DNA from: Ginkgo biloba
Taxonomy: Eukaryota > Plantae > Ginkgophyta
NCBI GenBank assembly: GCA_024626585.2
Contig: JANKJI020000001.1
Coordinates: 15,363,639-15,410,486, forward strand
DNA length: 46,848 nt
Reading direction: 5' to 3'
Positions 4,815 through 33,279 of the stretch are shown here, one piece after another (position 1 is the stretch's first letter; each line of letters opens with the position of its first letter). The notes under the pieces were generated by a model. That model was given only the letters and a program-made list of their open reading frames with translations. It was not told the origin of the DNA and did not search any database. The translations under genes were made by a program, and so were the position numbers.

Positions 4815-5439
4815 GTCACTTGCATATTAAGTATAGGTAACTTCATGTTAGTTGACAGGAAGTCACTTGCAACTTGTGTAGTTCTCTATTAGTTGATAAG
4901 TAAACACTTACAACTTGTGTAGTTTTCTATCAATTGACAGGAAGTCACTTGCAATATAGATAGTTACAATATATGTTACTTGCAATCATTGTGCAAGTGA
5001 CTTACTTGCACCTTGTATACAAGTGATTTCTCTGTTGGGTTACTTGCATCATAGGTGTAGGTTATAATTGAAATAAATTCAGGTAACGTTCACTCCAATT
5101 TTGGGTGAATCAAAGATGACAACTCCATAGGTTTATATGAATCACTCGAGCCCACTTGCAAAGAAAATGCAGGTGAGGGAAATTAACTATAGATGGGTTA
5201 CTAAGCTTCACTTACAGTTGTAATGTAAGTGAGCGATCCCACTCTTTGTCATTAGTTCACTTTCAAATTCTCTCCATGTCACCTACAACCAAGATGCAAG
5301 TGGCATTCCTTGTCTCTATGGCTTAGTCTAGTCTACTTATGGGTTTTGCTACATCTCACCTACACTCGATGTGTAGTGACTCTTACATGCACCTGATGTG
5401 CAAGTGAATTGGTTGAACTGCATTTGACTCGCATGTGAC
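4815..5439. repeat. Array of about 9 imperfect palindromes, consensus CACTTGCA-N7-TGCAAGTG, plus several half-sites
   Basis: Units at 4815, 4975 (GTTACTTGCA atcattg TGCAAGTGAC), 5001, 5039, 5151 (CCCACTTGCA aagaaaa TGCAGGTGAG), 5207, 5278, 5355 and 5382; weaker unit at 5415; half-sites at 4862, 4905 and 4944. Confidence 0.85.
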
Positions 5440-25574: not shown

Positions 25575-26000
25575 NNNNNNNNNNNNNNNNNNNNNNNNNN
25601 NNNNNNNNNNNNNNNNNNNNNNNNNNNNNNNNNNNNNNNNNNNNNNNNNNNNNNNNNNNNNNNNNNNNNNNNNNTAAGAGCATTTGATAAATATCTTTTG
25701 AAAAGAAAAGTATAACAAACCCTCACTACATGCAAAGTACAAATAAAAACTGAAAAAATCCACCAATTTCTTGGAAAGAAAGAATGTTGGGCCAAGTCTC
25801 GAATGCCCAGAATGCATACATAACTTGCTAACTACGAAAATATTAATAATCCAAAAGATCTAATAACAAATCTTTACATTACATAAAAATAGTACCGAAC
25901 ACATATTTCTTTAAAACTTGCAACAAATGTATTTTTGGCCTAAGTGGACATTACTTTATCTCATTTCATTTCATTCTGCATAGAAAGGATGAAAATGTAC

Positions 26001-26119
26001 CTGCGCCATGAGGCTGGACTTTCCCATGCCCCATTCGCCCAATATGCCCACAGCAATCGGAGATTTTACATAAGGATTCAAAAACAATGCGGCTAAACCA
26101 TTGGCGAAGTCACTTCTTC
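26001..26119 (-). CDS. Exon: KAP-family P-loop NTPase N-terminus with Walker A (GEWGMGKS)
   Basis: 119-nt exon flanked by gaatag| and |gtacat, translating GRSDFANGLAALFLNPYVKSPIAVGILGEWGMGKSSLMAQ. Walker A at 26,016-26,039; no stops. Confidence 0.9.
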
Positions 26120-26231
26120 CTATTCCACATAACATCATTCATAATATTACTATTTATGAAAGTAAGCAGAGAATTGCATCTCGTGTTATTTTATCATGAC
26201 AGATTAGTAATCAATAAATCTAGATTCTTAC

Positions 26232-26315
26232 CAAGATTGTCGGTTAATGCTGGCTGGTCAGTTCTATTTTCGGCAATCTTGTCAATACGCTCCATATGCT
26301 CCATATACTCCAAAA
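26232..26315 (-). CDS. Exon: linker into the KAP NTPase (VLEYMEHMERIDKIAENRTDQPALTDNLG)
   Basis: 84-nt phase-1/phase-1 exon flanked by tttctcag| and |gtaaga; carries the D.P...D.LG motif that precedes the KAP Walker A helix. Confidence 0.85.
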
Positions 26316-26610
26316 CTGAGAAACAATTGACGTTATTTTACAAAACTGACGAAAAAGATCTGCTTGATATTCAACGAGTAAGCTTGATCGGGCCGTAGGA
26401 AGATATTTTAATGCACTTGATCGGATATCAGGAATTTGTCTAGGAGTAGTTTCAGCCCAGGCACGAATTCACACGTGTCCTTTCCCCTCTTGGGTTGATT
26501 CATTTGGTGGTAAGACATTGAGTCATACGTTAGGCCCCGTGGGTTTTACAAACTTGGTATGCTCTTCTGTTGAAATATAAACAGAAAGACGAGGACTGGA
26601 AGCAACGTAC

Positions 26611-28320
26611 CTTTGTGAACATTTTCTTTTTCTTTCTCTGACAAACTACTTTTCCATGTGGAATTATCAATGTCAGCAATCTCTCCACCTCTGGTAAGAA
26701 GCTCCTGTGTCATCTCTGTATCGCCTAATTTTGCAGCCGTTTTCAGCAAATTGTTTGTGTCCTTTTCCATTGTTGTTTTACTTTTTTCATCCAAAAAAAG
26801 TTTTTGAGGTCACCCTCCCTTAAGCTCTCTTCTGCGGTACCGATGCCAGCTGCCGAAGCCCACAGCAAAAGGGATTTCTCCTCGTCGGACTCGCATTTGT
26901 CCAATATTAATTTGGCTATTTCGATTGCAACTTTTTCGTTTTCCACCTGCACTACGTAATGTAGTGCCGTTTTCCCATCACAATCGCGCTCTGCTAGCGG
27001 CCGGGCTCCATTATCTAATAGTGTTTTCACAGTTTCCTTGTGGCCTTCAATTGCGGCCTTATGCAGAGCAGTTTGCCCAAGAAAGTCTGCTCTCTTGACA
27101 TAATTTTCTAGAGTTACTCATTTTTAAAGTAGTTGTTTCACCATTTTTTTGTTGCCACTTGTGAAAACTATGTGTAATAGCATCTTTCAATTATAGTCTC
27201 ACATATCATACTCTGAAGATCCTTGAAGAAATAGGTCTACAAATTTTGTGTTCCCTCCCACAACTGCATAGTATAGACACCCTTGACCATCTCGATCCTT
27301 GATATCACCCAGTTTTACGTTCTGACTAAGAATATCCTCACATAGACTTTCATTTCCTAGAAAAGATGCAACGTGAAGAGGAGTTCTTTCATATTTATCG
27401 CATGTAGCTAATGCATCTCTTTCTTCACATTTTTTCAATAGTGCATCTACCAACTCTTTAACTATACCCTACTCCTTCCATTCAATGACATAGTGCAATG
27501 CTATTTTCCTGTCATTATCTTGGTCTAGCGATGATACTCCTCTGTCTAAAAGTTTTTTTATGAGATCGATATGTTGTCTACATATTGACTCATGTAGGAT
27601 CTCATGAAGTTCCATCTTTTCAAAATAGGCTTCTAGTTGTTTTGATACTGAAAGAAACTTTGTCACTATTCCTACATTGGAAATGGGTTGGAGGGTCGCC
27701 TTTTCCATAGGGCTAAGCCCCTTACATCCTTTTGAATCAATAGTATTTTCAGAGCTATAGTAAATCAACAAATCAATAATATTTTTGTAATCACCATTTA
27801 TTTCATTCATCATTGCATCAGGATCCATAGTTTCTCTAAAATGAAGTAGCAACTCACACATACGAGATTTCTCATAATTGCACCCCACGTGAAGAGCACT
27901 ATGTTTTCTTTCACTCTATGCTCTCGCCAAGCTCTCGCTTGTACAATGTTTATTGAAAAGAATTTATACATCTACTGATACTTCATGTTACTCTCCACAA
28001 GATATTAGATCCATGAAAGATGCAAAGATTGACAATGACTCTATGGAAGTAGGGCAATGTGTTGTGACTTTAAGATCTAACCGATTTGGCACATTTAGAA
28101 AATTTACCACAGGTCCTATGGGAAGTCAACGAATGATAATGTCTTCAAACTCATGAGGTTTGTTTGAATCCATCAGTTTCTTTTTGCATTCTCTAAGAGG
28201 CCTCTCACTTTTTAACTCTTTTTTCTTATCTTCCTTCACACCATGCAACTCTGCACAACATTCCTTACTGTAGTCAAGATAAGAAAAAATAAAAATTGCA
28301 TCTACTTCTTCTTTGCCTCT
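26611..28320 (-). pseudogene. Long ankyrin-repeat exon (about 9-11 repeats) of a KIDINS220-like ankyrin-KAP NTPase gene; disrupted
   Basis: A single frame links the ORF-track pieces: SALHVGC, IALHYVI, DKYERTPLHVASFLGN, DRDGQGCLYYAVVGGN, DFLGQTALHKAAIEGH, DCDGKTALHYVV, NLLKTAAKLGD. Nine in-frame stops between about 28,140 and 27,118 and one frameshift in a 7-base homopolymer (26,793-26,799). Donor AAAG|gtacgt at 26,611/26,610. 5' boundary uncertain (possible acceptor at 28,251). Confidence 0.9.
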
Positions 28321-28339: not shown

Positions 28340-29039
28340 GGAGACATATCATAAACTAAACTTAAGTCTCCTCTTTTTCTTATGGAAGAGATTCATCTAA
28401 ACCTAATTCCCTCAACTTGTATGATTTTCTTTTATTCACATATGCACCAACATCATTGCCTACCCATACTTCTTGCTTCCCCTTCAAGGAACTAGAACCA
28501 AATTTGGCATTGTCACAACTATTGCCTCCTAGTTGCTTGTAATCATCGACCATATCTTCTTCATCATGGGAATAATAATCTTCATCATCATCATCATCAT
28601 TATTATAACCTTCGTCTTTACCTATGAAGCTATTTTCTTCTTTATTTAGTTGTTCATTGAGCTCCCTATCTAGTTCTTCTTCTTCGTCGAGAGGATCCAG
28701 TTTAGGGAATTCATCTTCTTAAATCCATAACTAGTGAGGTTCATCCCACTCTACTAGATCTTTATTTTCCATTTTCTCTTCTTCATTGACTTCTTCTACT
28801 ACACAATTTTCAACTATGGACTCCTTGTTTGTATTCTCGGCCTCCTTGTCCTTCTCTTCTTCTTCATCAAGAAGATATTCCAACTGTTCTTCTTCAAGAT
28901 TTTCATATTCTGATTTATTTTCTTTATCATAAGTCTCATATCCTTCATTGAGTTGTTTATCCTCTATAACCACTTCCTCATCTAGTTCTTCATCCAATTT
29001 TTCATCATCATCTTCTTCAACAATATACTCTACAAACTT
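28340..29039 (-). pseudogene. Glu/Asp-rich low-complexity coding-like region upstream of the ankyrin exon
   Basis: One frame of about 220 codons with few stops (EELDEEVVIEDK...NNDDDDDEDYYSHDEE...); one frameshift separates it from the ankyrin frame. Origin (gene N-terminus or retroelement) unresolved. Confidence 0.5.
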
Positions 29040-32025: not shown

Positions 32026-32827
32026 NNNNNNNNNNNNNNNNNNNNNNNNNNNNNNNNNNNNNNNNNCTTCATATTTCAACCATGGATCAAATTTATCACA
32101 AAACATTGAACCGTGCTCAACCTATAATCACTCATAGAAAATATCATCATATATTCTTAGAGACCTCATAAAACATTACACTTTAAACAAATTTTCTTAA
32201 ATCTTATTCTTCAAATATGCACTAATAATCATTCACAACCAACCATAAACATACTATAGCATCAAAAAATTAAATTATAACTCTTGCTTCAATCAAAATA
32301 CTAAAGAGCTTATTTACCAAGCACACATAACTTCTTTCATAATTCAAAATGTGATGAGTTATCATGAAACACTTAATAACCAAAAACTTATTAATGAAAT
32401 GCAAATTTGAGGAGAAAGAAACTTAAAACCTTTCTTCAATATATTACCATTATGTACATCCACTGACAACTTAACCTTTGAAGATAACAAATAGTAAGAA
32501 ACTCTTACATTTTTTCTCAACTATTTCCATACTTGATAATTCATCTAACCATATATGATCTTTATTGGGGTTGATGGATAGTAGATTATTTTTTGAGTTT
32601 ATGAATTTTCATAATTCTATAATTTTTTTGTCACTCTTTGATGTTGATGAGGTCTTGTCACATAACTTGTCTTTTGATTTTGATTTTGATTTGCTTTGCA
32701 TTTTATTCTCTTGAAATTCCTTTCTATTCTACTCTCTTGATTGTTGGATTTTATAAAAGTGATTTTTAGGTCTTCTTTCTTGCAACTTATCTTTTTCATC
32801 CTTTTGAATTGATTTATTTAGATCACT

Positions 32828-32947
32828 AAAACCAAGGCCTACATTCTTTGGCCTTATTTTCATTTCAGTCAGAATTGTTATTCCTTGCTCATTATTTCCT
32901 ATTCCTCCTCCTTTGTAACCAATATTTTCTAGAAATATCATCCCAAT
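32828..32947 (-). pseudogene. G-patch domain, probably retroelement-associated
   Basis: IGMIFLENIGYKGGGIGNNEQGITILTEMKIRPKNVGLGF matches the G-patch pattern G..hh..hG...G.GhG...QG...........GhG. Confidence 0.85.
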
Positions 32948-33279
32948 AATTTTTATTTGTTTCTCAACACTATCAAGCATAAGGGGAATTCTACCCAATA
33001 AACCCCAAAGTGGGAATCCATAATAGATAAGTCTCCTTCTTAGTCCTTTGAATAATTTAGGTATAAGTGCTTAAGATTCAAATCCTTGATTTGGTACCAT
33101 TCCACTAATAAGATAAAAGGTCATCATTTAAAGAGAACAAGTAAATTTAGTCAGAACAAAAAAAAAACTTAGGAAAATATAAAGGGTAGAAGAAATAAGA
33201 GAAAATTAAAAGGCAAAAGAAACATTCTAGTATTCCTACCCCTACCAATACCTCCAAAAACCTTGAGTAAATAATTACA

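Follow-up and report, generated by a model that had tools for sequence, protein, structure and literature searches.

A Decayed Ankyrin–KAP Gene Fragment in Ginkgo biloba Points to a Little-Described Family of Plant KAP ATPases

Results

An Ankyrin–KAP Locus with Conserved Introns

The stretch of DNA considered here (the window) comprises 46,848 nucleotides of Ginkgo biloba contig JANKJI020000001.1. On its minus strand lies a locus that joins ankyrin repeats to the beginning of a KAP NTPase domain. A long, decayed ankyrin exon (26611..28029) is followed by an intron of 295 nucleotides (26316..26610), an 84-nucleotide linker exon that leads into the KAP domain (26232..26315), an intron of 112 nucleotides (26120..26231), and the first KAP exon (26001..26119). 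Both introns are GT–AG introns of phase 1, in agreement with the first-pass annotation, which had proposed two introns of these lengths with consistent phases from the letters of the sequence. A third intron begins with a phase-0 GT donor (25675..26000, minus strand) and is interrupted by a gap of 100 Ns (25575–25674).

The domain assignments were examined by searches run exon by exon, not with the joined spliced peptide; for the part of the gene after 26001, the proteins Gb_30354 and Gb_30356 served as queries. The KAP exon alone (26119–26001) matched positions 1–37 of the Pfam KAP_NTPase model (PF07693) with a score of 26.3 bits against a cut-off of 20, confirming the proposed KAP P-loop start. 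It contains the D-L-G-R lead-in and a Walker A motif of the form GxWGxGKS (GEWGMGKS, 26039–26016, minus strand), both of which are conserved in relatives. Three pieces of the long exon matched ankyrin models in Pfam, and we count about nine to ten repeats, degenerate ones included, where nine to eleven had been claimed. We rejected an identity as an NB-ARC or NACHT protein, since Pfam matches were to ankyrin and KAP families only, and we rejected contamination of the contig in view of the Ginkgo relatives, the conserved plant introns, and the presence of the sequence in many samples.

In a Cryptomeria gene of the same family, all three introns fall at the same codons and in the same phases as in the window. 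Contigs from X17, an RNA-type run, skip exactly 112 and 295 nucleotides and then read on past 26001 into another exon. Both of the proposed splices are therefore found in RNA, but in contigs that derive from a sister copy about 93% identical to the window and not from the window's own copy. Walker B and the transmembrane helices had been expected past the gap at 25575–25674; tblastn and profile searches detected no such later exons in the remaining 25.5 kb of the window.

Elsewhere in the window, a G-patch domain fragment (32732–32998, minus strand, 30.5 bits) is probably a retroelement remnant, and a region of short palindromic units with a 41-nucleotide tandem repeat at 4852–4954 is probably repeat DNA (4815–5439). 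Old direct repeats of 75–85% identity (14674–15523/20136–21011, a pair 5.46 kb apart; 30567–31135/31329–31950; and 35479–35764/35866–36151) resemble decayed LTRs or local duplications.

The Locus Is a Silent Pseudogene Fragment

The locus had been presented as a gene, a view that did not survive closer inspection. The long exon contains eight in-frame stops (at 27990, 27966, 27918, 27471, 27201, 27189, 27126, and 27120). In addition, compared with the sister copy that is transcribed, a run of Ts (26793..26799, minus strand) lacks one base, which creates a frameshift; the extra base, located behind 26792, is present in X15 and X17 and not in X1. An X1 contig covering 25694–28532 exhibited 0 differences from the window, stops and frameshift included. 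Assembly errors are thus an unlikely source of the stops, given this letter-for-letter agreement, with the qualification that X1 is possibly the assembly's own sample.

The window copy also looks truncated at its 5′ end, for three reasons. Similarity to the intact copy begins at about 28029, and not at 28320; the Cryptomeria counterpart of the long exon is 2.4 kb in length and is preceded by another exon; and a high-copy, acidic low-complexity repeat (28480..29039), over which the summed depth of DNA contigs climbs from 75 to several thousand, lies upstream, at the position in which one would look for the absent 5′ portion of the gene.

Between 65% and 100% of the words of the stretch, decayed part included, were present in 14 runs from five studies (at least eight samples), the runs being classed as DNA by size or guess. 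The best RNA-type runs held only 18–19% of the words. Two RNA-type runs had the sister copy's letter at every listed site as well as the missing base of the T-run, and a raw poly(A) run yielded only 11 partial reads, which came from a more distant paralogue; in these three RNA runs, no RNA with the window's own alleles was found. Because the stops and the frameshift are confirmed in X1 and RNA with its alleles was not found in those runs, we conclude that the locus is a silent, decayed, apparently 5′-truncated pseudogene fragment and not a functional gene.

The ratio of observed to expected CpG is 0.74–0.95 in four of the six segments of 26000–27100 and 0.2–0.5 in the decayed upstream part, a gradient that is roughly tracked by divergence from the transcribed copy. 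The lesser depletion of CpG in 26000–27100 would suit a locus that still yields a short, ankyrin-less KAP protein from an ATG at 26770, which lies beyond the frameshift: no stop interrupts the reading frame from 26794 to the end of both small exons, the splice sites are intact, and KAP-only models are known in Ginkgo, Cryptomeria, and Taxus. Such a product is nevertheless very improbable in our judgment, as the window's alleles at 26611–26770 were not found in the three RNA runs, the downstream exons are absent from the window, and at least some of the KAP-only models are split annotations.

A Decayed Duplicate of Gb_30355

The transcribed sister copy matches Ginkgo biloba Gb_30355, of which the locus is a decayed duplicate. 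At the amino acid level, the locus and Gb_30355 are 100% identical over the KAP exon, 82–95% identical over 27160–26800, and 50–75% identical upstream of 27160. Two near-identical KAP-only models, Gb_30354 and Gb_30356, lie one on each side of Gb_30355, and one or the other is probably its 3′ half. The arrangement would then represent a tandem pair that annotation has divided, the locus itself being the dead 5′ half.

A tract of 228 nucleotides (26231..26458), consisting of the linker exon and 143 nucleotides of intron, is identical to the transcribed sister copy between flanks that differ by 6–9%; at 7% divergence the chance of such identity is about 7e-8. Because the identity extends into an intron and is bounded by diverged flanks, the tract is likely to have arisen by gene conversion or recombination. 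In X15, both short introns are still present in the main contig of the sister copy (26001–27357), and a small contig extends into the third intron; retained introns, pre-mRNA, or DNA may account for this.

The patchwork of identity with the transcribed copy would also be explained if the sequence were a broken or hybrid haplotype of Gb_30355 that arose when tandem copies crossed over unequally, or a mosaic introduced in assembly. A single X1 contig crosses the identical tract unbroken and at even depth, with no second one among the records listed, which fits such a hybrid. We consider this explanation unlikely, however, since at least eight samples from five studies hold 65–100% of the words with the decayed part among them, and since the two KAP halves that flank Gb_30355 leave room for a second 5′ half.

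A Family of Ankyrin–KAP ATPases in Vascular Plants

The real finding is the family and not the locus, which is an ordinary pseudogene and matters as a pointer only. We identified at least 25 models in Ginkgo, about 50 clusters in Cryptomeria (a number that includes two overlapping annotations), and more than 10 models in Taxus, as well as members in Wollemia, the fern Pteridium, and the lycophyte Diphasiastrum. The Cryptomeria members fall in runs of neighbouring gene numbers. The genes of the family have about 12 introns, and in public runs single contigs carry full-length members in spliced form. In full-length members, an N-terminal fold resembling the APT domain is followed by ankyrin repeats and then by a KAP ATPase with a transmembrane hairpin. 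No angiosperm, bryophyte, alga, or animal was among the matches listed, in which bacterial KAPs came after the plant members. Absence from flowering plants is suggestive only, because three of the searches were filtered by word and length, the exhaustive one used a query of 39 amino acids, and a few Logan matches carry no species name.

That the family is little described, as had been supposed, was borne out. Its members are labeled in databases as uncharacterised or as "KAP NTPase domain-containing," and a full-text search on KAP terms, which covered main texts from outside most subscription journals, turned up no account of a KAP family in land plants. It is possible that the family has an entry in some plant gene-transfer table. 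As for the green lineage, the only mention that we found is a single line in one paper, on a KAP domain at a locus of the green alga Chromochloris (PMC7145615).

Full-length relatives score 85–105 bits on the Pfam KAP_NTPase model, and most members keep Walker A, a NAW motif, and Walker B (DDLDR), the last being present in Gb_30354 and Gb_30356 as well. Hydropathy revealed two hydrophobic helices between Walker A and Walker B, which appear as long helices in an AlphaFold model (pLDDT 79.7). The best solved fold for a relative's KAP model was that of the RADAR ATPase RdrA (Z 14.5, rmsd 3.3, 209 residues aligned), a match with which Foldseek agrees weakly (E 0.06); NLR folds ranked well below it. 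A search by sequence for solved KAP relatives returned only P-loop noise. Bacterial KAP clusters accounted for 10 of 10 Atlas shape matches among those listed, and the PADLOC models for QatA and PifA match the plant KAP domain partially. Pfam gave no match to NB-ARC/STAND or LRR models, only to ankyrin and KAP families, and SAM_KIDINS220 (PF23307) was matched neither in the seven proteins scanned nor in the precomputed domains of the plant matches. Mean identity among nine Ginkgo paralogues is 68% in the ankyrins, as against 82–86% in the ATPase core; the APT-like domain is conserved at 80%. In a conifer subclade represented by P0097 and P0098 (Cryptomeria) and P0100 (Wollemia), Walker A is of the GGSGMGKT type, NAG replaces NAW, and Walker B is changed; to judge from its motifs, this is possibly a catalytically different or pseudo-ATPase branch.

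The APT-like domain, of 75–90 amino acids, lies outside the window and opens about 60 of the plant proteins that we retrieved, isoforms counted. It is seen at residues 1–90 of P0009, P0044, P0048, and P0081, most full-length members have one, and in Cryptomeria it is encoded by an exon of its own. Its model (pLDDT 81.7) was compared with 48,161 chains, among which the small lobe of aerolysin (residues 7–84) ranked at the top (Z 8.9, rmsd 4.3, 76 aligned), followed by pertussis toxin S2/S3 (Z 7.1) and then by C-type lectin folds. Pfam APT (PF03440) is the best profile match but falls below its cut-off (15.3 versus 25 bits, E 0.02) and matches two of 12 members at all. No toxin part, whether pore-forming or enzymatic, is present in the plant members. 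Since no hydrophobic, signal-like stretch was seen at the members' N-termini and the ATPase contains a two-helix hairpin, the APT-like domain should be cytosolic. APT domains are lectin-like, with putative sites for glycans (PMC11610972).

A Single Plant Origin and a Bacterial Sister Lineage

In a tree built under LG+C20+F+G4, 17 plant KAP domains formed one clade (100/100), which, at the level of sequence, shows a single plant origin of the KAP domains. The fern and lycophyte members nest inside the gymnosperms in the mixture-model tree. The plant clade grouped with ten bacterial proteins at 97/93 in a tree that is unrooted, has no animal rows, and includes bacterial rows retrieved with plant queries, a procedure biased toward a closely related bacterial group; a quick tree of 96 rows agrees. 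Close members of the bacterial sister lineage (at least 38% identity) come from at least five GTDB genomes, namely one of Gaiellaceae, three of alphaproteobacteria, and one further MAG. At three sister-clade loci that we examined, the surroundings were metabolic genes or a baseplate operon, and no defence-island context was seen. In a Dormibacteraeota MAG (L082:353–10673), the KAP gene stands directly behind an operon for baseplate and sheath initiator that resembles that of a contractile injection system.

The grouping of the plant clade with a rare bacterial lineage favours a bacterial origin. The simplest reading would be a single transfer from a putative bacterial donor before the lycophyte split, followed by fusion to ankyrin repeats and to the APT-like domain and by the gain of introns. 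The earlier guess of horizontal acquisition fits the tree just described. An ankyrin fusion independent of that in KIDINS220, and hence convergent, would also be favoured.

Could the plant proteins instead be vertically inherited orthologues of KIDINS220 that were lost in algae, mosses, and angiosperms? The two share their domain order, the tree contains no animal rows to separate them, and an Atlas feature search placed a cluster of chordate NKPD1 first, with 0.94 versus 0.93 for bacterial clusters. Inheritance of this kind is nonetheless quite improbable: no animal protein was among the matches listed in plant-query searches in which bacterial KAPs reached E 6e-38, the tree places the plants with one particular bacterial lineage that is itself rare, the listed shape matches are bacterial throughout, and many losses would be needed.

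Discussion

Our preferred explanation is that the locus is a decayed duplicate of Gb_30355 and that the family to which it belongs consists of membrane KAP ATPases of bacterial derivation that act in ligand-switched defence signalling. We put the probability of this explanation as a whole at roughly 0.55. The family would have arisen once from a bacterial KAP gene that gained ankyrins and an APT-like lectin fold. The two-helix hairpin would anchor the protein in the membrane, leaving both termini on the cytosolic side. A putative ligand, such as a glycan or protein of foreign origin or derived from damage, would be recognised by the APT-like domain together with the variable ankyrin array, and binding would switch the KAP ATPase, which might then oligomerise and give rise to a defence signal or a change in the membrane.

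Several features of the family point toward immunity: the neighbouring gene numbers, the many partial copies, ankyrins that are more variable than the core, and a best solved fold that is the RADAR ATPase RdrA. On the other side, it is usual in any family for ankyrins to change more quickly than an ATPase core, and a build-up of pseudogenes is general in gymnosperm genomes. Also against an immune role are the APT-like domain, which is conserved (80%) and not hypervariable, and the position of the three sister-clade bacterial loci outside defence islands. Bacterial KAPs provide defence against phage in a manner that depends on Walker B (PMC13552941), and Tmn is a transmembrane P-loop oligomer that senses by means of repeats (10.64898/2026.03.01.708804); the immune analogy is drawn from these systems and from a birth and death of genes like that of NLRs. 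On this analysis we rate an immune role for the family as a little short of an even chance. A broader proposal, which we advance tentatively and with some doubt, is that lycophytes, ferns, and gymnosperms have in these proteins a second class of intracellular immune receptor, distinct from the NLRs: an ATPase of the bacterial anti-phage KAP type, acquired near the origin of vascular plants, equipped with ankyrin and APT-lectin sensors, multiplied to dozens of copies in gymnosperms, and absent from flowering plants through loss.

The ankyrin and TM–KAP order shared with KIDINS220/ARMS would also suit a scaffold for membrane signalling or trafficking, with the ankyrins as docking sites for endogenous partners and the ATPase governing how complexes assemble in growth or development. 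The strong conservation of the core, the conservation of the APT-like domain, and the first place of NKPD1 in the Atlas feature search are in keeping with such a role. Housekeeping scaffolds, however, rarely form dozens of clustered copies with many fragments and rarely drop out of angiosperms, and the SAM domain of KIDINS220 was not found in the proteins that we searched. We therefore regard a scaffold as somewhat unlikely and favour ligand-switched defence signalling.

Comparison with Known Systems

In KIDINS220, N-terminal ankyrins precede a KAP NTPase that has membrane helices between Walker A and Walker B. The KAP family to which it belongs has been described (10.64898/2026.03.01.708804). 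The plant proteins, which had been credited with a KIDINS220 architecture, do resemble KIDINS220/ARMS (and, in the KAP domain with its membrane helices, NKPD1) in the order of their domains, with the ankyrin array first among them. The likeness does not extend further: besides the added APT-like lectin fold, the plant members have two evident TM helices and no SAM_KIDINS220 match, number in the dozens, and fall with bacterial KAPs in a tree without animal rows.

Among bacterial KAPs (PifA, QatA, EF_KAP), the nearest are uncharacterised proteins from MAGs of Gaiellaceae, Dormibacteraeota, and Alphaproteobacteria. These have the core, the TM hairpin, and a C-terminal helical motif in common with the plant proteins over about 600 amino acids; they differ in having neither ankyrins nor an APT-like domain and, at the three loci examined, in lying outside defence islands, whereas the plant genes have their dozen or so introns. 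RADAR RdrA is more distant, with about 15% identity confined to the core, and the plant family has no RdrB partner. Tmn, of the YobI family, likewise has two TM helices inside a P-loop domain and senses through a repeat arm (10.64898/2026.03.01.708804), but ankyrins are absent from it, and it is classed with YobI. Plant NLRs share with the family a repeat sensor joined to a P-loop switch, expanded clusters, pseudogenes, and gene conversion. Their ATPase is of another family (the plant KAPs have no NB-ARC, LRR, or TIR match), and in the plant KAPs the repeats are N-terminal and a hairpin lies inside the ATPase. Finally, the APT domain of aerolysin and pertussis toxin (PF03440) resembles the predicted fold of the N-terminal domain of 75–80 amino acids, but identity is 18–20%, below the Pfam cut-off, and the plant domain is apparently cytosolic and fused to an ATPase.

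KAP NTPases have been described from bacteria and animals, and their anti-phage role in bacteria has come to light only recently (PMC13552941). The family supplies immunity candidates that can be tested in conifers, Ginkgo, and ferns, and it raises the question of why angiosperms seem to be without ankyrin–KAP genes. If our explanation is correct, a prokaryotic P-loop module would have been turned into a eukaryotic repeat-sensor receptor, in convergence with both KIDINS220 and the NLRs.
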